From Pelomyxa schiedti (lineage: Eukaryota > Protista > Evosea): a DNA stretch of 43,356 bases. Location of the stretch: contig JAHLWZ010000628.1 in the NCBI GenBank assembly GCA_020536535.1, positions 1-43,356 of the forward strand, written 5' to 3'. The translations under genes and the position numbers were made by a program. A model generated the notes under the pieces. That model saw only the letters and a list, made by a program, of their open reading frames with translations, searched no databases and was not told where the DNA came from. Below, piece by piece: positions 1 through 43,356 of this stretch (position 1 is the stretch's first letter; each line of letters begins with the position of its first letter).

Positions 1-5243
<5,243 letters not shown>

Positions 5244-6393: not shown

Positions 6394-7348
6394 TCATAGC
6401 TCTTTGAAACCATGTGCAACATAAACTTCCAATTCAAACAGAGACGAGATGGTAGTTTGCTCACAGACAACATGTGACACACCAAGTACGGACTCTGGTG
6501 TGACTTGTCTGTGCGACCTGATGTCAAATGCAGAAGGAGAGTTGCCCAATGAAAGTGCATGGCAGTGGGTTGTGAATCCGCTGTTATCGTTGGTGTGTGG
6601 GGACCCTGGATGGTTGTAGAGAAACCTAGAGAGCTGCGGTTTGGTGAATTCCGGGTGTGATTCTGTAACAGTTCCAATGCATCCCACAAGCGCAGTCATG
6701 CAATTTGTCTCAATGATTGGGGGCCGGGAGTAACCAGGACTGGTGAATATGTTCTCTCCGTAGATTGGTGGTTTTGATACAGCAGTGGATGTGAATTTAT
6801 CAAGTGAAGCAACGCCACAAAAAAGTGCAGGGAAATCACCAACCATTCCTCTCAGTGTATTGTCTAGCAGAGATGACAACAGCATAGGCTCTCTTGGTTC
6901 TGTGCAAAAATTGGTTCCACACAGATAGTGGCAAAATAAAAATGAAACAATCAGTGTATGAAAACTATCCTATATCAATTCCATCGTCATCCATCCATCC
7001 CACAATACCAATTTGGATCCTGTAGTCCGGAGTAGCTCCCAACCCCACAAAGACCCCAAACGAGGTGTTGAAAGTGGGGCCGTTCGCCACACCACGGCCG
7101 CCAACCGCAGTTATGGGTCCACCCTGCACTGCATTCGTCGGGCACACATAAGTGACGCCGTTCAAAGTGACCATCTCGCCCAAAGAGCCCCAGTCAGAAT
7201 CCACAGTGCCGGTGCCCAGCCCACACACCAAGTCGGTGGATCTCAGAGGAACCTGGGATTCCACACCACCAAGTAACCCGGCAACCACATTGGATACCGA
7301 ACCCCTCACCAAAGCTTCACTGTCACGCTTCCCTGTATTGTTCATCAT
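6394..7348 (-). CDS. Alpha-acetolactate decarboxylase-like (AldB/BudA fold) protein, divergent; start uncertain (7348 or 7427)
   Basis: Exon 1 (SVSNVVAGLLGG...GLGTG...SLGEMVTLNGVTY) resembles ALDC STxxALMAGLYDG...GLGTFxxLDGEMIxLDG. An intron at about 7009-6900 joins it in frame (QI|EPREPMLL) to ORF 6885-6394, which has TAVSKPP, ALVG, THCHA (HxH) and a later GVSHV, like the Zn-binding HxH...H signature. Confidence 0.55.
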
Positions 7349-7522
7349 AGAGGTCAAAATTAAATCTGTACGGAAATTGATCCAGACCTGTGACAAGTTT
7401 GGTTTTGAAATGGAGGTTCTCTACCATTTAAGAATGTGGTTGCAGCCCAGGCCAATTGAACCACATTCAGAAGCAACCACTTTCCTTGTTTCTCGAGAAA
7501 CAACAGTCGAGGAAAACAAAAA

Positions 7523-9161
7523 ATGGCAGCGAGCGGCGTAGACGATGCAATGGTCGGAGACGCTGTAGCGAGTGGTGCTAGTGGGAGTGGCAGTAGCGAG
7601 GGGGCTGCCGCCACAGTAGCAGCCGCCACCACCGCCGCGACCACCAGCACGACCAGCACGACCAGCAGCAGCAGCAGCACGACGGCCCCCGCCGCGGCGG
7701 CCACCACCACGACCACGGGGGGGCTGGGGCTTCTGCCCGAGGCGCAGGGGGACAGGGTGCGCCCGGGCGACGTCCTGATCGCGCTGGTCAGGAAGGGCGA
7801 GTACGCGGCGGTGCACGTGAGGCACGGGGGCCTGTTCAACTGCGCGTCGGGGTCGTACCTCCATGACAAGCTCATCGACCAGGAGTACGGTTCCACAGTG
7901 TGCGCCAGCCCAATTACCACTTTATTTTATTTTTTTTTTTTTTTTTGGGTTTTCCTAGTTGGGAACTGGACCTAGATATTGCTGTTTTTATGTTAGATAC
8001 GAGATAATAAAGCGTGATTGGCAAGGGTGGTTATTAACTTGGGAAAAGGTGCCATCCTCTAAGAATGAGGGTTCGATCACGTTGCTCAAATTTAGTCCGG
8101 TTTTGTGGACCAAGGCTCTCACTCATCGCACCCAGATTTTGTACGGCCCAGACATTTCTCTTATTATTCAAGTTCTGGGTATTCGGCCAGGTTCACTTGT
8201 GATTGAGTCAGGTTGAAAGGAATCTTGAAACTTAATTTGGCTCATCTTTGTGCACCAAGGAACGGGGAGTGGGTCTCTTTCAACTTCGCTGGCTACGACG
8301 GTTGCACCACATGGCCATCTTTATACATATGACTTTCACCCAAACAGATCCTCACAAGCCAAGTACATTTCAGTGACTTAAATTTTTGTGGGTTTATTTC
8401 TTTTTTCAGGGAGGAATTTGTACGTAATGGGATCATTAATATCACTGCAACTGAGCGAGATGTATGCCAATACGGGTTTGACTTAGATTCTATTGACTTG
8501 AAAGGAAAGGTATTCTCACCCCTTGCTGACATTTTTTTTTTAAGAACTACTTTCTCCCCAATATGTTCAAGACAGATTGATGCCGTGTTTCTTGATTTGC
8601 CTACACCCACAAAAGCTATTCCTCATGCCTGCAAAATGTTGCGGCCCTTTGGATCCGTATGGAGAGCCGAACAGCTATTGCCTGACTTACTTTGAAACCC
8701 AGATTTGTACATTCAGTCCATGCATAGAACAAGTTCAAGGCTCCCACCAAACTCTCGTAGAGAACGGTTTTGTTGGTACCTCCCCACTACGAAGCCAAGT
8801 TTCCGGACTAATTCTTTTCCCTCAAATAGAAATACAGACCGTGGAGTTCCTGGATAGACCCTACAACATCTTCCCATATCGTTCGACCGTACTAGATACT
8901 ACCCCAGCAGCACCCACTCCCACAGAACCAAGCGCAACAAGCACAGGCACCACCGCTACAAACAGCAACAACAGCACAACACCGGCCAAACCCGGCACAA
9001 AGCGAAGCAGAGCAAATGACAAATCCGCTGTGGCATCATCCTCGCGCATAGTATGTGCTCCTGTATCCGACATATCTGGTCATACAGGCTACCTCACCTT
9101 TGCCCACAAGTCCCCATCACCACTCACAACTCCTCCCCCATCTTCTGCTTCCTCCTCCTAG
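7523..9161 (+). CDS. TRM61: tRNA (adenine58-N1)-methyltransferase catalytic subunit (Trm61/Gcd14), multi-exon
   Basis: WTKALTHRTQILYGPDISLII, PGSLVIESG|TGSGSLS, DAVFLDLPTP, CTFSPCIEQVQ and C-terminal HTGYLTFA are Gcd14/Trm61 motifs. Confidence 0.95.
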
Positions 9162-9398: not shown

Positions 9399-11146
9399 AT
9401 GGCGAGTGGGTTCCAAAAGCACGTTGCGGCTGTCACACGCGACTACATCATTAATCCACGTTTGGGTATGCTGTTTCTCCCCTTTGTGTACCGTACTTTT
9501 TTTTTTTTGACTCGTCAAATAAGACTATCGCACTGTTACTGGTGTGAATGGACCACTGGTTATTCTGGAAAACATCAAGGTAGAAATGGTCGTTTGAAAT
9601 CCGTCAATTTAACTTGCCCTCCAAGAGACCACAATTTGCCGAAATCGTGAACTTAACACTGGCTGATGGCTCTATCCGCAAAGGTCAAGTGCTGGAAATT
9701 GCAGGCAATAAGGCCGTCGTGCAGGTTTTCGAAGGGACATCAGGAATTGATGCCAAGCATACACACTGTGAATTTACTGGTGATATTTTGAGACTTCCTG
9801 TGAGTGAAGATATGCTTGGAAGGGTTTTCAATGGTTCAGGCAAACCTGTAGACAAGGGTCCCAATGTTCTCGCAGAGGACTTCTTGGATATTCAAGGTGT
9901 CTATCCTTGAAATTGTGAAGCGACCTTACTTGTGTAGGTCAACCCATCAACCCCTATTCGCGTGTTTATCCGGAGGAAATGATACAGACTGGCATTAGTG
10001 CCATTGATACAATGAACAGCATTGCCCGTGGCCAGAAGATTCCCATCTTCTCTGCTGCCGGTCTTCCTCACAATGAGGTGTGTTTTTATCAGTAAACCAC
10101 CTTTTTTCACCGTGCCAAGATTGCCGCTCAAATTTGCAGGCAAGCTGGTCTAGTGAAACACAAAGGAAAGGGCACCTCTGACCACTCAAATGAGAACTTT
10201 GCCATTGTTTTCGCCGCTATGGGTGTTAACATGGAGACTGCTAGGTTCTTCAGGCAGGACTTTGAGGAGAATGGTAGTATGGAGCGTGTGACACTGTTCC
10301 TGAACCTTGCAAACCACCCAACCATTGAGCGTATTATTACACCCCGACTTGCATTGACAACTGCCGAGTACTTTGCATACACCTGTGACATGCACGTGCT
10401 TGTCATTTTGACCGATATGAGTTCTTACGCTGATGCACTTCGTGAGGTAATTTTTCTTAAATCCGACCACAATGTGATGAACTATAGGTATCTGCCGCCC
10501 GTGAGGAGGTGCCTGGCCGACGTGGTTATCCAGGTTATATGTACACGGACTTGTCAACCATCTATGAGAGAGCTGGACGTGTAGCTGGAAGACCTGGGTC
10601 CATCACCCAGCTTCCAATTTTGACCATGCCTAACGATGATATCACTCACCCAATCCCCGATCTTACCGGCTACATCACGGAGGGTCAAATTTATGTCGAT
10701 CGTCAACTCCACAATCGACAGATTTATCCACCCATCAACGTGCTGCCTTCATTGTCCCGATTGATGAAAAGTGCCATTGGTGAGGAAATGACCAGAGAAG
10801 ACCATGGCGAGGTTTCCAACCAGCTTTATGCCAACTATGCCATTGGCAAAGACACCCAAGCCATGAAGGCTGTGATTGGTGAGGAGGCTCTCTCACCAGA
10901 GGACAAGATGGCCCTTGCCTTCCTTGACAAGTTCGAGCAAAAGTTTATCAGCCAAGGCCACAACGAAGCCAGAGACATCTTCCAGGTTGGTTTGCGTTTA
11001 CCCGAAATTTCCTCTCACCATTGCAATTACAGTCCCTGGAGCTTGCTTGGTCCCTACTTCGTACATTCCCCAGGGACATGCTAAAGCGTATTTCTGACAA
11101 AACCCTGGATGCCTACTATCTCCGCGAGAGGAAGGGTGATGTCTAA
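9399..11146 (+). CDS. VMA2: V-type proton ATPase subunit B, multi-exon
   Basis: [106 protein letters not shown]; last exon ends ...RKGDV* at TAA 11144-11146. Confidence 0.98.
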
Positions 11147-18151: not shown

Positions 18152-18833
18152 TCACCCAAGTGCACGAGGTTGAAACCAGTTAGCCATGCAGTATTCACAT
18201 GTCAACAAAGCGGTAACTATGGAATTTAGTTCCCAAAAAAGCACTGCCAAATAGATGACATTCCTGGCAGCTTATTATTACATAGGAAAGGGATGGAAAG
18301 GAGGTTACTTTGAACAGGCTTTTTCGACATTAAGAAGGTCCTCAAAGTGTGGTGGTTAATATCTCGCGTTTGAAAAGAATGTGGGGGCAGAGATTCTTTC
18401 GGACAACCAGGAGCAATGAACACAACAACTGCAGCAACGTGGGGCCATTAATTAAGAAAGAGAACTAAAAAAATAAAGAAAGAGCGGAACACGAACCACG
18501 AGTGTCGAGGCCACACAAGTCGTCGATCTCTGTCCTCGAATATTGACCACCCATTCCCCTGACGCTCACGAGTTGCTGCGGCGCCACGTCGACCGGAACA
18601 GGCCGCACAATGATCTCTGCGTTGTATTTGTTGTCTTCGAGTTTCACGCCTCCCATGTTTTCCAGAGTGTGTTGCAACTCTGTGAGCCACTCCGACGGCC
18701 GGAGGCCGTACGTGTCCACGAACACCCTCAACGGTGGTGGGGAAGAAGGGTCGGGTGAAGACGGTTCGGGACTTACAAGCCGCTGCACAGAGCGGTAGAC
18801 GCCCGCTACAACATCGGTGCTTGATGCCGCCAT
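18152..18833 (-). CDS. Small TIR/DUF4062/NDT-like (flavodoxin-fold) protein with a hydrophobic C-terminal segment, copy A, 3 exons
   Basis: LRVFVDTYGLRPSEWLTELQHTLENMGGVKL fits the betaA-alphaA pattern of TIR. It continues AEIIVRPV and YSRTEIDDLCGLDTR|VVVFIAPGCP (helix Glu followed by a hydrophobic strand). The third exon (TARNVIYLAVLFWELNSIVTAL) aligns with copy B. The gene is supported by its paralog; the fold call is inference. Confidence 0.6.
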
Positions 18834-18971
18834 TTTGAAGAGGCGGTCTTCTTCGGTTCTGAAAACAAGGTGGCTTGACACAAGTTGGTTCCGGCCAAGT
18901 TTGGGGCTCTTCCCAACTTGTTCTTGCCAAGTTTTAAGGTTGCCTCTCTTTTAACAAAAAAAAACATTCAA

Positions 18972-20238
18972 ATGGCCGCTTCCTGCACGACAACTTCAAG
19001 TTCTTGTCCCCTACCAGAAGTCACCAAACTTTTACTGGTGGGGAGACATGGATGCGGAAAAAGTGGGACAGCTGGTTCGATTTTCCACTACCTTTCTGGT
19101 GAACGAACTATGCAATTCACAATTGGTGACGGATGCCAACTACATACAACCCGGCGTCCAGAGCAAGCAAGGATTTCTGTTGTAAGATCAGGAAAGGTGA
19201 GGACCTACGAAATCACTGATAGCCAAGGTTCTTCTACTGGGCTTCGTTATGCTTGTCTCTAATGAGTCCTAGGACTGGCGCCTACTTCTTCGAAAGGCTC
19301 TCTGCTTGAGTATTGGTGGTACTTGAGGGATCTCGTGAAAAGGATTGTAGGGCATCTTGACTATTGAATTCAATTAACTTTACTCGTCCTGTTAAAGAAT
19401 CCACATTTTGTAATACTGGTTACTTCTGCTCAAGATTTTAGAGACTCAGCATGTGCGGAAGCTGCGTACGCACGTCGATTCCTACGGAACATTCGAAATT
19501 TACAGGGACTTAAGTTCTGTTGTGTGTTTCTCATTAAGAATGAATTTATTTCTGAAAAATGTGGCAGCATCACCAGTGCCTGTGATAGTCACCCATGTGA
19601 CAGAGCTACTGACACGAGATCTCAGTGCGGCCGTTCCAGTAGTTGAACAAGCAATGAGGTCCCTCCATATTTCAACAAATGTGTACCCAGGTACCGCTGG
19701 AGTGTTCAACCAACGAACTCACAAATCACAGTGGAAAATTATGGAAGAGAAGGAGGCCCTGATCCACTTAAAGCCACTAATGCTACCTTTGACAGGCTCT
19801 TTACTGACTTTGATAATTGGCTGGGTCATGCAGTCCCAGTGTGTTCCGTGCCTTCCTTCAGTTAGAAGTGAGATCCTTCTTTTCAGGTGGCCCAAGGCAA
19901 TTTTCCCTCTTTGCTCACAATTGTGCGAGCTTGGTATGGCTATGACCAAGAGAATACTGCCTATGGGATGGATGTCACAAGACAGATCCAGGATTTGGTG
20001 CAGGGCTCCAGTCAACTGCCACCAACAAAGGCGACAAACCAGCTCTTTAATAAAGGTACTTTGTTAATGATAGGTACGTGTCTTACATTTTTTAGATCCC
20101 TGCCCACATTGGGCCAAGAAACTCTGGATCAGGTACAGATACAACTATGATGAGGAAAAAAGTCTGGTGTGCGCGGAGGGCCAAGTGTGCCGGATTCCAG
20201 AGACTCAGGGGGACTGGCCAATTTGGGAGAATGAGTGA
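18972..20238 (+). CDS. IFI44/AIG1-like P-loop GTPase fused to a C-terminal DUF3395/SUEL-lectin-like beta domain, copy A, multi-exon
   Basis: G1 LLLVGRHGCGKS, G2 HTT, G3 DSQG, G4-like VIVTHVTE, then YP|VENY (IFI44 has LLTHVD and VxNY). C-terminus IVRAWYG...DVTRQIQDLV...NQLFNK|DPCPHWAKKLWIRY...LVCAEGQVCRIP...WPIWENE*. Confidence 0.78.
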
Positions 20239-20320: not shown

Positions 20321-23247
20321 ATGCGGCGAAACGGTGCCGGGCGCAAAAGGCCCTCGTACGACGAAGACGAGGGCCAGTGCCATGACGACGATGAGGACTA
20401 CGTTGAGGAGCCCGTAAGTACGCGCAAAGGCTCTGGGCACCGCCAGCACTCGTCGTCCACCACGACAGGTAGCAAAGGGGCTCTATGTACGACCACGGCC
20501 ACGTCGGGCCACGAGGCCAGGGCCCACAGCAGCGGCAGCGACGACGAAGGGGACGCATGCCGAGGACGAAACGGCGCGGGGCGGGGCACGGCCACGGCGG
20601 AGTCCGCAGGGGGCGCGGGTGGGGGGGCGGCGGCGAAAGTCACCAGAATCAGCGAGGCCGACGCCATTGTGGTGCACAACGCCCTGCACGACGTCGCCGT
20701 AGCGCCCCAGTCCGCCCGCGGGTCAGGCAGCGGCACCAGCGAAGACGAGGGGGCGGAGGACGAGGGGGCGCTGGGGCAGCGGGTCGAGAGGGGCGGAAGT
20801 CACGGCGAAAAGCCAAGGAAGAAGAGAAGACCCAAAAAAACCCAAACGCTGGAGACTGTGTATGTAATGGGCAGGGAATGGCCTGTGGAGTGGTCCTCTG
20901 CGAACTCCTACAGGTAGTCCTACCTCTTCCTTGAATTTTTTTTTTTTCTGGTTTTGAATTCACGTTCAAAATTGTTAGGCAAGTCGTTTTTAGTGATGAA
21001 TTGAAACTGGCTACTCAGGTTAGGAAAATCACCTCAGTGTACTTAAGTCTCACTTGAAGAGTACAGAACCCAAAGAAAGAAAATCATTGGGGAGAGATGG
21101 CAAAAAAGGGATCCAAAATAACTTGGTGTGCATGATGAAAGGCACTATTGTTCATCTTATAGACTAAAGGATTCAATGTCCAGACCGGTGGGGATGTGTT
21201 CTAGATGGAGTTATATTTAAGGTCCACCCCACCCACTCGATGTTGGCCATTATTCTCTGTTCTAATAGCAAGCATAGAAATGTAAAGCTCTTATCTCTGC
21301 CGCGAATGGCACTGAGCATGCTCCGCGTAGGGAGCCCAGTTCTCTAAATGCTATCAGCAGTAGCACTGGTGAGGAAGAATTAGAACATTCGCATGTGGAA
21401 TCTGGAACCCCGCTTGTGCAACCTTCACAAAAGAGAAGTAGGACTGACCAGAGTGTGAGCTTGCCATCATAATAAACTGGACAACTTATTTTCCATTGTT
21501 CGGGACACAACTGTTCAAATAGCCAACAACCTGTCGGATTGAGGCCACAACCATACTTCCTAGTACTACTGCAACACACTGTGACACTTCTGCAAGTGTA
21601 TCTGATACAAGGTCAAACATACATTTATGTCTACGGTTGTTCTCACCCTTTAACATAGACCAATGTGTATCTATGGAAATATGTGCTACAGGAAAAATCC
21701 CGAGCACTTACAGAGATTCCAGCACCCAAAGAAAATTGAGCACCCCAGTTTACCAACTTTGACAACCGATCTGAAGCCCGTCAAAGAAAATACCTGTATA
21801 TCTTTTATTTGCGCATTCCTATATTAATACTTTGATTTCAGCTGCTGTGCAGGAGGCCGACTTCAAGCCCTTTCCAGATGTCTATATTATCAAACCCTCT
21901 GACATAATAACGGGAGAGAAGCTTGGTGCCGGCTCTTTTGGGGAGGTAGTTGAACTCTGCGTGCATTGTGAAAATTTGACTGCAGTAGGTTCGGAAAGCT
22001 ACATGGAATCACCGTGATGTGGCAATAAAGATCATGCACAAGCAAGACGAAAAATCCAAGGCAATGTTTCTCAAAGAGGCTGCATTAATGTGGTATGTTC
22101 TCCACATTGTATTCCATAATATCAACAACTGTTGGAAAAGCAAATGCAAACATATAAATATTGTGCGTTGTCATGGCGTGTGCACTGAACCCACTTTATC
22201 AATTGTGATGGAATACCTGCCTCAATCACTTATCAAAGTGGTAAAAAATCTGGGGGATCGACTGTTGGGGACCTCAGAAGTTTTATTTTTTGCATGTGGA
22301 ATAGCACAAGGTGTTGAGTACTTGCACTCTTTGCATCCCCAAATTATTCACAGGTCTTTTTTTAATTTTTCCGCTTATTTTTTATTGATTTCTTAGGGAT
22401 TTGAAGGTAGTCTTTTCTTTTGAACCAAAAGAAATCAATTATAATGGTATTCTTCAGCCTGATAATATCCTTCTGGATGATCACAACACACCCAAGGTTT
22501 CCTTTTTCTTGTCGTTTTTTCTTTTGGTGCAAATCTACAGAGATTGACCTTCTTTCCAAAAATCGATTTAAAGTAGATTTGTGATTTCGGTTTTTGACTT
22601 CAAGGTTTCTCTCTATACTCATCAGACTCCTCAGGTGTGTCTCGAGAAAGAGCAGAAGAAGACCTTACAATGACAAAAATTGGGACTCCTCTGTACTGTA
22701 TAGTTTCCCTGTGGTGGTTTTTACACTAACTTTTGTTAGGTGCCCCTGAAGTGATGACACTTGGAAAATACAATGAAAAGGTTCATCGAGAGTGGTAATT
22801 GTACATCAATCATTTTTTCTCAAGGCCGATGTATACTCCTTTGGGATGCTTTTATTCTTCATGGTTACTGGAAACCACCCTTTTGCATCTGAAGGTTTCT
22901 AAAAGGAGTTGCACAAATGCTAACACACGTTTTCTGTAACAGGAGTACTCTCTGGTTATCAGATAATGCTCAAGGTACCCCAATGAAGAACACATTTAAC
23001 TTTTTCCCTTTGAATCCGCTCATTTTACATGCAGGTTGCTGTAAACCACCAAAGACCTGAAATTCCCACCACCTGTGACCAGTTCCTTGCTTCCCTGATA
23101 CAGAAATGTTGGGGTATGCAGACGCACAAAAATCCACATAATATTACTTACCCCTTTCAATATACAGACAAGGAGCCCAACACCAGGCCCACTATGACAC
23201 AAGTCAAACAACAACTCGAAGAGTTTTCTGTACCCTTTAAACACTGA
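20321..23247 (+). CDS. Tyrosine-kinase-like (TKL) Ser/Thr protein kinase with an upstream PBZ (PAR-binding zinc finger) and a low-complexity/NLS-like N-terminus; multi-exon
   Basis: LGAGSFGEV, VAIK, FLKEA, IIHR|DLK|PDNILL, ICDFG, TMTKIGTPLYCAPEV, ADVYSFG, RPTMTQV. The exon from 21659 reads RPMCIYGNMCYRKNPEHLQRFQHP (PBZ). KPRKKRRPKK is a basic cluster. Confidence 0.88.
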
Positions 23248-24880: not shown

Positions 24881-27800
24881 TCAAGGCAATGGTTTCATGC
24901 CCCGTAATTGACATGTGCTTAAGTACAATTGACGAGCAGGGGAGGGTGTGTCAACTAACATTGAGCCAGGGACTGGTTCCCAGTTGACTTTATCTGTGTA
25001 GTAGTACAATGCAAACCGTTCCTTCCTGTTGTGCATGAGTTCTGTGTTTATAAGTTGTCAGTACATCCGATGTAGTAAGGTAGATCACTTACGCCAGACG
25101 GAAGCTGTCGTGGCGTGGAGCTGGAGTCGTAGTATACTTCCATATGGATCTGTTTGCATCACTTGGCCTATGGGACCTAGTTTTTCCTCTACGAGATAAA
25201 GCCGACTTGGTTCAACAATGACCACTACGTCCATCATCGGAACGATAAACTGCGGTTCGGCAGCTGATTCCAAGCTGCTGAACAGCGGTCTCAGGGCGCC
25301 GTGGACTTGTCCCATTCCTATATGTGTTTGTTGAAAAAAAAACAGGAAGTGAAGGAGGGGACTGGCTGTACCTCGATGAATGGAATCAGAATGGAAGGTG
25401 CAATGGGTCAAAGTAAGCAGAAGGCCAGTGATCTTGGTAAATTTGGTGGATCACATTAATGCCATGGTGGGATCTTATGGGAAACTCACTCGAGAACCAC
25501 ATAGCTGCTCTGAGGTACACAAGATCGGGAAACTGGCTTCAAGGCAAGAGGCTATTTCTCTAACATTCAGGGAGGGTTCCACCGCCAATACGTTGTCCTC
25601 GAACACACAGAGAATCCTCAACTCGGATACATTTAGCTCACGACATTTTTCGTTCAGACTCTTGATGTCGGAACCCTTGTGACAAGAGATAACTGCGACA
25701 TGTTACGTGCAGATACACGCCATTATGCACATACAGGAAAGAAATTCCGGTGACAGAGGGCTTGCTGTAAATGTGAAATCGTTGTGACGATTGGGTGACT
25801 TGCCAGAGACTGTGGCAGAGCGAGTGAGCCGTATTTGTGTGAATATGACTGGTCGCTCCATCTAGGAAAGGGCAGAAGTAATGAAAGTGATGAAGTTGGG
25901 GAGCCTTACATCAAAAAGCGATTCGTTAGGACCCGGCTCCATCAGAGAAGGGAACAACAAGGGACGCATATCCTCGGGCTCATGAGAGAGTGCCTGGAAT
26001 AATAAGGTGGGGCAAGGGGTAAAAGGCTGCTTTATTTCATCTGAGGGTAATTTTAATACACACACCATATGCAAACTAGAAAAGATATTGCACACCACAC
26101 AGCAGCTTGTCACTGGCCAATATCATCGGCTTTTCGACGTCACCAGAAGACCAATTGACTCCAACAAAAGCTCCACACCCGGCTACAGTCAAAGTTTCAC
26201 ATCTCGTTCCATTCATGGCAATGATGCGTCTAATGATGCGTGGTTTCTTGAAACCGTAAGGGGAGAAAAAAAGTATTGATGGGGAAGTGGCGCACCTCAC
26301 TTTGTCTGTAGAACATTGGAATAGAGTCGTGCATGGTTCCCGATAGGATTCGGCACATGGTTGTATTCTTGGATGGGAATGGGTAGACTGATTGCAAGTA
26401 TATAACAAGAGGACCACTGGCAGAGCAGTTATGTATGGCTGCCTCAAGCTGGAAAATGTGGGAAACCATAATAAAAGACGAGACGAGTTCCTACCCTAGC
26501 ATTTGAGGACTGGAGAAACTCTTTAGCCCTGTATTTTTGGGCTTCCACTGGTGAAGGAATATTTGCTTTCACCATGGAAAGAAGGGAGCGCTGAAGAAAC
26601 AAGAAGTTTCCTAGCAGTTGCTTCCGCAGGGGTCGCAAAGTAGAGTCTCTCCTAGAACGTTTTAGTATTGATAGCAGTTGGTTAAGTCAATCTTACTCTA
26701 GTTCCAGATTTAAGGTTTTGCCAAAGCGCCTGAGGTCTTCTTCTGTGGCGGTTGTGTAGATTTTGACAAGAGGCTCCAAAACATATTTCTCAAAGCCAGT
26801 GACAGAAGTACCTTCTTCACCTTTCTAATTTTATGAGAGATCAGATATCACTCTCTGAGTGGAGGTGCCCAACCTTCAACCAACGCGAGTGAGGGACGTC
26901 CCAGCACCAATTTCCCCACAATTTTTCGACTAATTTGTCTTCCTCTATTCCTAACTTCTGTGCGTACACTCTTGCAAATGTGGGCAAAGTGAATCCCCAA
27001 TTTTGCAGTCCACATGAAAACAAGACGTTTCCCTTTATCTTTTTCAGCAAGGGAATCAAAAGGGAGCCTATTACACACTCTGTCGGGTCTGGCGTTCAGG
27101 TCTCCCATTGTAGAATCACCCTTCAGGTGATAGGCTACAACTGAGTTGAACTCCTGTACATGGGCATATATCCTGTTGCTGAGCTCGGAAATGGTACAGG
27201 TCGTGTCACTCAACAGTACATCTAGCTTGTTCACACAGAGAAGTGGTTTAACTTTGTGTTTAATAGCTTTTGCAATGAGCATGTGCTCAGTGGGACCAAA
27301 GCCATCCTGGACAGTGGTTACGAGTAAGCAGCCGTCGATAACTGTCCAGACACTGGAAATTATCAGAAGGATCAAATATTAAAAATGACGTGTACTTCTC
27401 AAGGAAGAATTCCCTATGAAAGTTCACACATGTGATTTCCCCCCTTTCCTGGTGCAAAAGAGGCACTACTCGCGGATTTATTGTGATCCCTCTCTACAGG
27501 TAACCATTAAACAAGTCGTGGAAATATGAGTGCAAAGTACCAATTGTTCATCTTGTCGGGTATCAGTATAACGCATTTCTCCAGCGGGCTTCGCCCATAA
27601 AGCTAATCGAAGGTGAGAAAGGGAATTGTATGGGGTAGACTTAAACTTTACCAGAAGGTGGTACCACCGCTGGAATTCCAGAAGCCGTAGTTGTCTCGGT
27701 GATGCTTGTTGCTGCTGATGGAATTTCAGAAGATGTCATACTTTCAGAGACAGCTGTTTCACGTTTTTGAACTGCCACAAAAGATGTGTACTTGGACAGT

Positions 27801-40231: not shown

Positions 40232-40711
40232 ATGATGCAAGCGGCACTCGGCGTTTCATCCCACAATTCGCAACCGCTTGCACCCCCGGCCCCCATTCCA
40301 TTCGCTGACCACAAGTTGGCGCCACCAACTGGTTTGTCGACTGGACATGGCACTGCACCCCCCTCCTCCGCGCCGACGACGACGTCGTCCACGTCGTCCG
40401 CTTCCTCGACGTCGCTGTCGTCGGCCGCCGCGTCCCTGGCTCCCCTGAGCCCGCCGCACCCGCCGTCCCGCACCCACTCGCAGCCCCGGTCGCTGCAGCC
40501 CCCGCCGCAGCCGCTGGGGCCCGGCCCCGTGGCCCTGCCCATGCCCATGCCAATGGCAATGCCCGCGGCCAAGCCCACACGGCTGCAGCAGGTCTCGTCG
40601 GCCCCGCCGCCGTCGTTCCCTCGCCCCGTCGCCGTGCTCATCGGCGCCCCCGTAGGGCTCGGCCTGCCGCCCTACGCCCCGGGGCCTCTCCCCTTCGGCG
40701 TGCCCTTCCGC
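40232..40711 (+). CDS. 5' fragment of a Pro/Ser-rich protein, truncated by the assembly gap
   Basis: An ATG-initiated GC-rich open frame, divergent from the FNBP4-like gene (137 bp between start codons), with the same first-exon style as other genes here; it runs into the N gap. Confidence 0.6.
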
Positions 40712-40811
40712 NNNNNNNNNNNNNNNNNNNNNNNNNNNNNNNNNNNNNNNNNNNNNNNNNNNNNNNNNNNNNNNNNNNNNNNNNNNNNNNNNNNNNNNNN
40801 NNNNNNNNNNN
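40712..40811. other. Scaffold gap (100 N, placeholder of unknown true length)
   Basis: Run of 100 N. Confidence 0.99.
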
Positions 40812-41085
40812 GCCACGTCGACCGGAACAGGCCGCACAATGATCTCTGCGTTGTATTTGTTGTCTTCGAGTTTCACGCCTTCCATGTTTTCCAGAGTGTG
40901 TTGCAACTCTGTGAGCCACTCCGACGGCCGGAGGCCGTACGTGTCCACGAACACCCTCAACTTTGGTGGGGGAGGAGCAACCGGAGGGTAATCTAAAACA
41001 AAGTCAATGGTCACTACGGAGCAGTTTGGAAACTTTGGTAGTCCCTATTGTATTCACGCGCCTCCGAGTTTGTTGGCCACAACAT
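40812..41085 (-). CDS. TIR-like protein copy B, 5' part
   Basis: Predicted MLWPTNSEA|LTIDFVLDYPPVAPPPPKLRVFVDTYGLRPSEW...; the core is near-identical to copy A at 18487-18732. The first exon is inferred from splice phase. Confidence 0.6.
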
Positions 41086-41201
41086 TCATGACAGTTTTCT
41101 TTGAATCCAGACAACCTCGCCACCAAACTTTCGGTTACAAGTTGGTTTTTTTGTTTCTCTTTTGTCTTTGTTCTTGGTGAGGAAGTGGAAAAAAAAGAAC
41201 T

Positions 41202-42513
41202 ATGGCCGCCACTACACATGCCAACAAGCCGGAACTCATCAAAATACTGTTGCTCGGGAGACAGGGATGTGGGAAAAGTAGCACAGCCAACACAATGGAA
41301 CAATTACTTTCAGGGGAGCCAGTACCAACAATGCCGTTCACAGTCGGTGACGGTGGACAACAGCACACCACGTCTCATGTGCGGCAAGTCTATGTTCCTG
41401 TTGAACGTTCTGGAAGGGTGACAACATATGTCATCATCGATACACCAGGTAATCGCCACTGAGCTTTTCGGTATCAAATTAATTGGTGCTAGGACTGGCG
41501 ACAGGTTCATCTGAAGCTGTAGTACGCAAATGGTGGATCGATTTGAAAACTGTAATAAATAAACATGTATTTTGCCAGTAATCCATATTTAGTGTGATAA
41601 CATTCACCAGAATCCAGATGTGGTAATGGTGGTTGCGGCGGCTCAAGATTTTGGAAATCCAAACAGTCCCCAGGCCACTTCCGCTCGTAAGCTAGCGCGG
41701 AACCTCGGAATTGTACAGGGATATAATTTCTGCGGTATGTTTCCCATCAACTAGAGACATTTGAATTAATTTCAATTGTACAGCATGTCCAGTTCCGATA
41801 ATCATCACCCATGTGTCCGAACTGACCACAAGTCTTTCTGCAGGAGATGCTGTTATAGCGAAGGCACTAAAGGCAATACGAATTTCTACAAACTTCTATC
41901 CAGGTGAGACTGGAGTACCCCCCAAACAGATTAACAGATCATCACAGTGGAAAATTATGGAAAGGAATTAGGTCCTCCCAGAGTCGATGCAACAAATGCT
42001 TCACTTGGAAGGTTATTTAATGCCATTGATAAATGGAGAATGAGCAAAAAGACAGAAGAAGCACTAGGCTTGCACGCTGCACAAGATGCTAATGCGGCAC
42101 GTTCTTTCTCTTTTCATCAGTGATTACTAACACCTCTCTGAAGGTGGTTGAACCTGAATTTTACTGTCAGCTTACGATTGCTCGAGCTTGGTGGGGCTGG
42201 GACAGAACCAATCCTGCCTACGGAATGGACGTAACAGCGTTCATCCAGGGGAAAGTCGAGGGCTTGAATACTTTGCCTCCACTAAAACCGGCCACTGTGG
42301 GCTTTGAAAGAGGTTCCTTTTGTGTTTCCCTAAACACTTTCTGGTTACAGTGTAAAAGATCCATGTCCACACTGGAGAAAGAAACTTTGGATTTCTTATC
42401 GGTACAACAATGACAATGCAGAACTGGAGTGTTCACAGAATGATGTGTGTTGCATTCCAAAGATCCCATGTAACTGGCCAATATGGGACGACCAACCTAT
42501 GAATGTGGAATAA
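41202..42513 (+). CDS. IFI44/AIG1-like GTPase fused to a DUF3395/SUEL-lectin-like domain, copy B, multi-exon
   Basis: ILLLGRQGCGKSS, HTT, IIDTPG, IIITHVSE, YP|VENY, IARAWWG...DVTAFIQGKV...|DPCPHWRKKLWISY...WPIWDD; intron positions match copy A; TAA at 42511-42513. Confidence 0.8.
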
Positions 42514-42742: not shown

Positions 42743-43356
42743 TCACATTTTTGTTACTGAGAACATGTATTCCAATCTCTTGGCAAAATACACATTCAAC
42801 ATGAATGCCGAGGCCCAAATTGACTCAGTAGTAAGGCAAACAAATGGCACCGGGGTATTTGATAATGCAGAAAACGACAGCTCCAAGTCCCACCAGGGTG
42901 ACAATATTACTGCATACTTCCAAGTTGTTACTATCAAGGATGTAATGGATCAGGTGTTTACCTGGTTTGACTGGTCTACAGACTTGGAGTCTTCGTGACA
43001 TCAAGAAGTCCCTCAAGTAATCCTTGCCGAATTCGCGTATTTGAAAGGAATTGTGTGGAAGACTTTCTTCAGGGCATCCAGGGGCAATGAACACAACAAC
43101 TGAAGGGGATGTTGGGAGAACTGTTCAGAGAAAAAGAACGAACACGAACCACGAGTGTCGAGGCCACACAAGTCGTCGATCTCTGTCCTCGAATATTGAC
43201 CACCCATTCCCCTGACACTCACGAGTTGCTGCGGTGCCACGTCGACCGGAACAGGCCGCACAATGATCTCTGCGTTGTATTTGTTGTCTTCGAGTTTCAC
43301 GCCTTCCATGTTTTCCAGAGTGTGTTGCAACTCTGTGAGCCACTCCGACGGCCGGA
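42743..43356 (-). CDS. TIR-like protein copy B, 3' part (continues the 40812-41085 fragment through the terminal repeat, or is the next tandem copy)
   Basis: QHTLENMEGVKL...YSRTEIDDLCGLDTR|VVVFIAPGCPEESLP...KP|VTTWKYAVILSPWWDLELSFSAL...*; same two intron positions as copy A. Confidence 0.65.

Follow-up and report, generated by a model that had tools for sequence, protein, structure and literature searches.

A duplicated head-to-head gene pair in Pelomyxa schiedti couples an orphan small gene with a divergent AIG1/GIMAP-like GTPase gene

Contig JAHLWZ010000628.1 (C628) of the Pelomyxa schiedti assembly, which was analysed as a whole and whose 43,356 nucleotides are referred to here as the window, carries a small gene (S1) on the minus strand and a GTPase gene (G1) on the plus strand that start head to head. 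The question that this locus raises is what the two genes encode, and whether their pairing has any functional meaning. A preliminary description of the DNA had read the pair as a candidate immune module, in which a membrane-associated TIR-like enzyme is joined with an IFI44-like GTPase that ends in a glycan-binding lectin domain, and had observed that the pair is duplicated. We find that S and G constitute a two-gene cassette that is specific to P. schiedti and that has almost certainly been amplified by segmental or tandem duplication, with at least three intact copies as well as decayed ones. The observation of a duplicated divergent pair was thus confirmed, while the interpretation held in part and failed for the most part, with no specific support for a TIR-plus-lectin immune system. 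The coordinates of the features are collected in Table 1.

Table 1. Features of the S/G pairs and neighbouring genes in the window.
Feature	Position	Strand	Basis and remarks
S1, small orphan gene	18152-18833	-	Open reading frame and frames; exon 1 18497-18833, exon 2 18309-18428, predicted exon 3 18152-18270 with stop; approximately 191 codons
Spacer shared by S1 and G1, putative bidirectional promoter	18834-18971		138 bp
G1 (Pelo_8000, P0005, 331 aa)	18972-20238	+	NCBI model, 7 exons: 18972-19227, 19273-19346, 19398-19521, 19568-19690, 19732-19838, 19887-20055, 20096-20238 (sum 331 codons, identical to Pelo_8000)
Homogenised tract within S1 exon 1	18487-18748	-	Begins at the PPLRV codons and takes in the first 11 nt of intron 1
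S2, 5' part of a small-gene copy	40812-41085	-	3' part lost in the N gap 40712-40811
G2, paralogous GTPase gene	41202-42513	+	Same 7-exon layout as G1
S3 (Pelo_8009, P0003)	42825-43356	-	Tail-to-tail with G2; 5' end cut by the contig end
GCD14-type tRNA methyltransferase subunit, V/A-type ATPase subunit, EF-Tu-type GTP-binding exon (minus)	8577-9158, 10509-11081, 26851-27375

P. schiedti is an anaerobic archamoeba whose genome was obtained by single-cell genomics (PMC8887013), and bacterial and archaeal endosymbionts reside permanently inside its cells (PMC10579272). Related copies were found on contigs C1338 (L015; both genes) and C1485 (L016; G only), and the proteins encoded on C628 and C1338 are NCBI hypothetical proteins of P. 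schiedti (Pelo_8000, Pelo_8009, Pelo_17415 and Pelo_17416). For full-length proteins we used the database models P0002 to P0006, where P0005 is G1, P0006 is the GTPase of C1338 (G3), P0003 is S3, P0004 is a solo S copy and P0002 is the S paralog of C1338; for S1 and G2 the individual exons served as queries.

The start codons of S1 (18833, minus strand) and G1 (18972, plus strand) are separated by 138 bp, exactly as the preliminary description had it, and in the second pair 116 bp lie between the starts of S2 (41085) and G2 (41202). That this second pair has the same introns also proved correct, since exons and S intron positions match: the exon order and layout of G2, and likewise of the C1338 copy, follow those of G1 exon by exon, and the S intron after the ...DTR codons occupies the same position in all copies. 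The first exon of S2 is split from its core by a 41-nt intron. The GTPase paralogs are clearly diverged, as had been noted, with 50% identity between G1 and G3 and about 41-59% per exon between G1 and G2, and G2 is closer to G3 (72% in exon 1, 76% over the part of it that aligns) than to G1 (56%). Only pair 1 is complete within the window, as S2 abuts the N gap and S3 runs off the end of the contig.

A genome-wide six-frame search revealed a third intact pair on C1338, in which S (start 4624, minus strand) and G (start 4739, plus strand) are 114 bp apart. The same contig carries a decayed pair (7288-7670) from which the 5' ends of both genes have been deleted, and a solo S gene (P0004; 6286-6881, start 6881) with no GTPase at its head. 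In the decayed pair, the S remnant runs from residue ~94-115 onward and the G remnant from residue ~46, and it looks from the sequence as if a single deletion took both 5' ends together with the promoter. On C1485 there is a 5'-truncated G fragment (246-737) that comprises exons 5-7 only, and no S copy was found anywhere on this 5.6-kb contig. It can be seen that all G copies with an assembled 5' region, namely G1, G2, G3 and the truncated one, face an S copy across 114-138 bp. The solo S and the C1485 fragment stand outside this arrangement, and the copies all come from one genome and are not independent samples of kept pairing. We also weighed whether S could be an exon that moves or recurs in other places, and dismissed this, as genome searches at the protein and DNA levels locate S in these arrays only.

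The 121 nt of S2 that adjoin the N gap recur unchanged as the final 121 nt of the contig, which belong to S3. Judged from this sequence, S2 and S3 may be one gene, and pair 2 may be a single unit of 2,424 bp from a tandem array that was collapsed. In sequencing run X4 a unitig specific to pair 2 had approximately three times the depth of a unitig specific to G1, a ratio in which amplification bias is possible.

Both gene families are, almost certainly, transcribed and spliced. We used two single-cell RNA runs of one sample (X1 and X2) as assembled contigs, which report on transcription and splicing and not on expression levels; the data of runs X3 and X4 have the character of genomic DNA. Contigs of X1 match G1 with 100% identity and have three GT..AG introns removed, precisely at the junctions given by the NCBI model (19521>19568, 19838>19887 and 20053>20094). 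A contig of X2 represents an S-family transcript from which the 68-nt intron at 18429-18496 has been spliced out, with CT..AC ends that read GT..AG on the minus strand. Beyond the shared core this contig continues into the spliced 5' exon of an S2-type copy, where a loose end joins ...GGAGGGTAAT to TTTGGTAGT. The transcript differs from exon 2 of S1 at 7 of 43 positions (18386-18428), and its further sequence differs from S3 too. As its exon 2 is unlike that of every assembled S copy, at least one further expressed S copy is probably missing from the assembly.

We estimated selection per exon by the Nei-Gojobori method. The ratio of non-synonymous to synonymous substitution (dN/dS) was approximately 0.2-0.3 for exons 1 and 2 of S and for exon 1 of G, and in exon 7 of G, where dS was high or saturated, dN lay far below it. 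We conclude that S and G are both constrained and almost certainly under purifying selection.

A different pattern was seen in the core of S. At the DNA level, the identity of the S1 core tract given in Table 1 reaches 99% with S3 (43140-43356) and 97% with S2 (40812-40977), while identity of the same tract to the C1338 copies is only 72-73%, and identity drops abruptly at both of its edges. Comparison of S1 with S3 gave a dS of 0.044 for exon 1 as opposed to 1.36 for exon 2, with no more than a 68-nt intron lying between the two exons. In independent unitigs of a public DNA run the tract forms one higher-depth piece that is joined to several flanks, and it is therefore not an assembly artefact of C628. 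We conclude from these sequence comparisons that the core exon of S is homogenised by gene conversion that is limited to that exon, between copies lying 22-24 kb apart.

The spacers between the paired genes have one short sequence in common. The 8-mer CAAGTTGG is present twice in the 138-bp spacer of pair 1, at 18881-18888 on the plus strand and at 18913-18920 on the minus strand, and the same sequence or its complement is found in the spacers of pair 2 (41138-41145) and of the intact C1338 pair (4681-4688, minus strand). In each of the three it lies approximately 48-57 nt from the start of S, and the spacers are otherwise diverged beyond alignment. The window as a whole contains five occurrences against 2.6 expected, which is not significant, and only the placement in all three spacers is notable. 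On this ground CAAGTTGG is a candidate for a shared cis-acting element of the promoter. A near-copy of the 8-mer, CAAGTTGC, is found upstream of the solo S gene.

The protein encoded by G1 consists of a P-loop GTPase domain (approximately residues 15-230), followed by a beta domain resembling DnaJ-C11-C (DUF3395) at residues 238-309. Between P0005 and P0006 there is no variation in the G1 motif (GxxGCGKS) or in the G3 motif (DxxG). Profiles were judged against the Pfam cut-offs (27 bits for AIG1, PF04548; 21.9 for MMR_HSR1; 27.1 for PF11875; 31.4 for SUEL, PF02140). P0006 scores above the cut-off with both AIG1 (30 bits) and MMR_HSR1 (23.4 bits), and the AIG1 scores of exon 1 of G2 (23.6 bits) and of P0005 (19.3 bits) are below it. 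The AIG1 match spans profile positions 2-99 of 212 only, and the AIG1 model also finds matches in bacterial control genomes. When a two-sequence profile of G was compared with the PDB, the best matches were GIMAP5, 7, 4 and 1, all of them weak (E 0.008 and above). Nearly all of the ten nearest language-model feature clusters in the Atlas are AIG1 and/or MMR_HSR1 clusters (0.86-0.88), which we regard only as a lead. A Pfam scan found no TLDc domain in G, and a word-indexed search for homologues returned proteins of P. schiedti only. By profile, the nearest family of G is AIG1/GIMAP, and the protein would thus be a soluble P-loop GTPase of this class (TRAFAC, paraseptin). Members of the class in animals and plants are associated with immunity, and the proposal that G belongs to a defence-associated class of GTPases is supported by the profiles to the extent that P0006 exceeds the AIG1 cut-off.

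The C-terminal domain of G had been taken for a lectin of the DPCP-type SUEL family, and this assignment did not hold. P0005 matches PF11875 (DnaJ-like_C11_C/DUF3395) with 27.1 bits, which is the cut-off itself (E 3.9e-6; residues 238-309, profile positions 41-123), and PF11875 is also present in the database's precomputed annotation of P0005; P0006 scores 11.5 bits. The two C-terminal exons of G separately match consistent parts of the profile. When the genome was scanned in six frames with PF11875, no match at E <= 0.01 was obtained anywhere, not even in these G genes, since two exons each encode a part of the domain. The SUEL model, on the other hand, reached only 15.4 bits on P0005 (E 0.025) and covered 25 residues (275-299). 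Residues 228-331 of P0005 contain three Cys, there is no signal peptide, and the sequence search of the PDB with G matched no lectin or SUEL structure. A short DPCP..K.L..Y motif is common to DUF3395 and SUEL. DUF3395 is therefore the better fit for this domain, on a match that is borderline. The domain has been proposed to serve in protein-protein interactions and is found in the J-protein of the mitochondrial outer membrane, DNAJC11/TbJ31 (PMC10432679, PMC4128653).

In the S1 protein, an N-terminus rich in Pro and Ser is followed by an alpha/beta core of approximately 95 amino acids and by a C-terminal hydrophobic tail. Members of the S family are approximately 150-190 amino acids long, with a variable N-terminus and a hydrophobic C-terminal segment, and their alignment contains the invariant block IIVRPVP-DVAPQQLV...GGQYSR...LC-L-TR, followed by VVVFIAPGCPEE, with invariant Cys in the LCGL and PGCP motifs. 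Averaged over its 19 amino acids, the S1 tail has a Kyte-Doolittle hydropathy of 1.91, the means for S3 and P0004 being 2.42 and 1.5, and YPGAI is conserved after the tail in P0003 and P0004. The tail exon of S1 was predicted by frame homology with S3 and P0004, across a 38-nt intron and with no RNA support. An exhaustive HMMER search of 1.84e9 representative sequences recovered only the four P. schiedti proteins as homologues of S, a feature search of the ESM Atlas gave no usable match for it, and scans of metagenome contigs with the S and G alignments found nothing.

Pfam, NCBIfam and PADLOC likewise assign no family to S. In particular, no TIR-type family (PF01582, PF13676, PF08937, or DUF4062, PF13271) was matched in Pfam at E<=10 or E<=1 by S1 exons 1+2, P0002, P0003 or P0004, and no PADLOC defence model, ThsB-type models included, was matched by S at E<=10. 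Two sub-threshold matches were seen, UPF0004 at E 0.13 and a MiaB-like TIGRFAM at E 0.013, and both cover residues 12-51. An AlphaFold 2 (AF2) model of P0002 shows a beta-alpha-beta-alpha-beta arrangement at low confidence (predicted local distance difference test score, pLDDT, 58.8; predicted template modelling score 0.51). When this low-confidence model was submitted to Foldseek, it retrieved a mixture of flavodoxin-like domains with template modelling (TM) scores of 0.38-0.48; they include CheY receivers, the TIR domains of SARM1 and RPS4/RRS1, B12-binding domains, nucleoside deoxyribosyltransferase and MTH538, and the TIR chains among them scored E 1e-3 to 2e-2 with TM 0.38-0.45. In an exhaustive structural search with the same model, B12-binding, MiaB N-terminal and CheY receiver domains were on top, and no canonical TIR domain was among the top 50. 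The sub-threshold sequence matches lean in this direction too, and the core of S is thus tentatively compatible with a flavodoxin-like alpha/beta fold, a broad class that includes TIR, but nothing singles out TIR. Of the description of S as a membrane-associated TIR-like protein, the hydrophobic tail and a core that may be compatible at the level of the fold are supported, and no profile match supports the TIR assignment. The Glu of the YSRTE motif in S1, which had been put forward as catalytic, varies within the family of four, since P0004 reads YSRT--DD at this position, and nothing found supports an enzymatic role for S.

A possible explanation of the pairing, which we prefer tentatively and hold at a little short of an even chance, is that the pair is a lineage-specific cassette in which a tail-anchored S protein serves as the membrane partner of the soluble GTPase. 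S and G would be driven from one bidirectional promoter, for which CAAGTTGG is a candidate element; S would act as anchor or regulator of G at the membrane; the DUF3395 domain of G would provide a module for protein-protein contact; and the process served might concern the membranes of organelles or endosymbionts, or defence. The analogy is with soluble and membrane-anchored GIMAPs, or with Toc159 and Toc34, which work together at membranes. That both genes have remained intact in the pairs at approximately 50-65% protein identity argues mildly for coupling. A more elaborate form, which would be improbable as it stands, is a co-regulated GTPase/receptor module that arose in the Pelomyxa lineage as a protist equivalent of the cell-autonomous control that GIMAP/IRG-type systems exert over intracellular microbes. 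S, as a tail-anchored protein with a flavodoxin fold, would bring an AIG1-class GTPase to the membranes of endosymbiont vacuoles, of organelles or of phagosomes, or switch it there, and gene conversion would keep the S core identical in the paralogous pairs while the GTPases diversify.

Several observations weigh against a membrane partnership of S and an AIG1/GIMAP-class G. The S and G transcripts each come from a different RNA run of one sample and do not amount to co-regulation. The tail exon of S1 is predicted only, and the NCBI model of the C1338 S copy ends with no clear membrane segment. On the side of the GTPase, G has no canonical NKxD (G4 motif), although an invariant T-x-A-Q-D of P0005 and P0006 appears to sit at the expected place; G1 is under the AIG1 cut-off and P0006 under that of PF11875. 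Structure models are of low confidence for both proteins, and with a pLDDT of 41.4 the AF2 model does not confirm the fold of G. For P0006 together with P0002, prediction of a complex returned no answer (a score of 0.00, with no control runs), which tells neither for nor against binding. Finally, P0004 is an S copy without a GTPase at its head, and the pairs all descend from one duplicated unit of one genome, such that the pairing may simply be inheritance.

This last point leads to an explanation that would not need to invoke any joint function, in which neighbouring genes were co-copied by segmental duplication and S and G work independently; we regard it as only slightly less likely than the membrane partnership. 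It would account for the confinement of every copy to two or three arrays within a single genome, and no ortholog was found outside P. schiedti with which retention of the pairing could be tested. The presence of a solo S and the decay of the arrays are also in keeping with it, as is the disagreement between the S and G trees, G2 being nearest to G3 while the S1 core is almost identical to that of S2 and S3. However, three pairs have both genes intact, spliced and constrained at approximately 50% (G) and 60-65% (S) identity with saturated dS, the length of the spacer has been held at 114-138 bp, and one 8-mer has been kept while the remainder of the spacer diverged beyond alignment. It also speaks against mere adjacency that the decayed pair apparently lost both of its 5' ends together by one deletion. 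An alternative that does assign a joint role to the proteins is that S is a degenerate flavodoxin-like domain for handling a cofactor or phosphate (of the UPF0004, B12-binding or CheY type), which would act as a small-molecule or redox regulator with the GTPase as chaperone or output, by analogy with MeaB. The coincidence of the UPF0004 and MiaB-like matches on the same residues of S, and the invariant Cys in its LCGL and PGCP motifs, would fit such a role. All of these matches are sub-threshold, however, and the S model is of low confidence. UPF0004 has three cluster-binding Cys, B12-binding domains a DxHxxG motif and CheY receivers an acidic pocket; two of the three Cys, the B12 motif and the acidic pocket are not evident in the S alignment. 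Moreover, G is a TRAFAC GTPase whereas MeaB belongs to the SIMIBI class, and we consider this alternative unlikely.

The immune module of the preliminary description, that is, a TIR/DUF4062-like NAD+ or nucleotide glycohydrolase S acting with an IFI44-like GTPase that bears a SUEL-type glycan sensor, is in our judgement very unlikely. In its favour are the presence of the SARM1 and RPS4/RRS1 TIR domains among the many flavodoxin-like Foldseek matches, the AIG1/GIMAP class of G with its immune associations in animals and plants, and the sub-threshold SUEL match on the DPCP...KKL motif. Against these stand the absence of TIR, TIR_2, DUF4062 and ThsB-type matches for S in the Pfam and PADLOC searches, structural scores of CheY, B12-binding and MiaB-N domains that equal or exceed those of TIR, and the loss or shift of the YSRTE Glu in P0004. 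The lectin half fares no better, with a SUEL score far under its cut-off, only three Cys, no signal peptide, no SUEL structure matched and a better fit to PF11875; in addition, the surrounding genes are housekeeping genes. We conclude that nothing found ties the pair to immunity.

Comparison with known systems helps to separate what is new here from what is not. In the related archamoeba Entamoeba histolytica, AIG1 genes form recombining tandem arrays (PMC5884625), and the G genes too lie in recombining arrays of an archamoeba. With AIG1/GIMAP proteins in general, G shares the P-loop GxxGCGKS followed by T-A-N/G and DxxG, AIG1 is its best Pfam match, and GIMAP5, 7, 4 and 1 are its best matches in the PDB; it differs from them in matching only the first ~100 of 212 profile positions, with G1 under the cut-off and G4 non-canonical, in carrying a C-terminal DUF3395-like domain, and in having no close relative that we could find outside P. 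schiedti. The combination of a soluble GTPase with a membrane-anchored component recalls the GIMAP and Toc systems, but the anchored component here would be S, an unrelated orphan that is not a GTPase. With the DUF3395 domain of DNAJC11/TbJ31, G has the A-W-Y-G, DVT and DPCP..KKLWI.Y motifs and a cytosolic setting in common, whereas in G the domain is attached to a GTPase and not to a J domain, and P0006 reaches a score of only 11.5 bits. The likeness of S to TIR proteins (SARM1, plant RPS4/RRS1 and bacterial ThsB-like proteins) is confined to the flavodoxin-like three-layer alpha/beta topology of a low-confidence model; S has neither a TIR model match nor a conserved catalytic Glu, and the matches to receiver, B12-binding and MiaB-N domains are as good as those to TIR or exceed them. 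Rhamnose-binding lectins of the SUEL type (PF02140) share with G the short DPC-x-x-x-K-x-L-x-[VI]-x-Y near the C-terminus, and G lacks their Cys framework and has no signal peptide.

Arrays of AIG1-class GTPases in Archamoebae are thus already known, and the new elements are the fusion with DUF3395, an orphan as partner gene, and gene conversion that is precise to the exon. If S and G do work together, they would represent a lineage-specific way to put a GTPase of the AIG1/GIMAP class on a membrane, in a host that bears endosymbionts, and, if the domain assignment is true, DUF3395 would be known from one more context in addition to DNAJC11. The locus as described here comprises an orphan gene with a divergent GTPase and clearly illustrates gene conversion that is limited to an exon; the reading as a new immune system of TIR and lectin is not supported.

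The genes that neighbour the pairs in the window are housekeeping genes (Table 1), and their genomic setting is not a defence island. Low-complexity open frames with a GC content of 56-57%, rich in Gly/Arg/Asp and in Pro/Ser, adjoin the pairs at 20321-20917 and 40232-40711, neither of which matched a Pfam family. The first of these frames lies directly 3' of G1, and the second lies across the N gap from S2.

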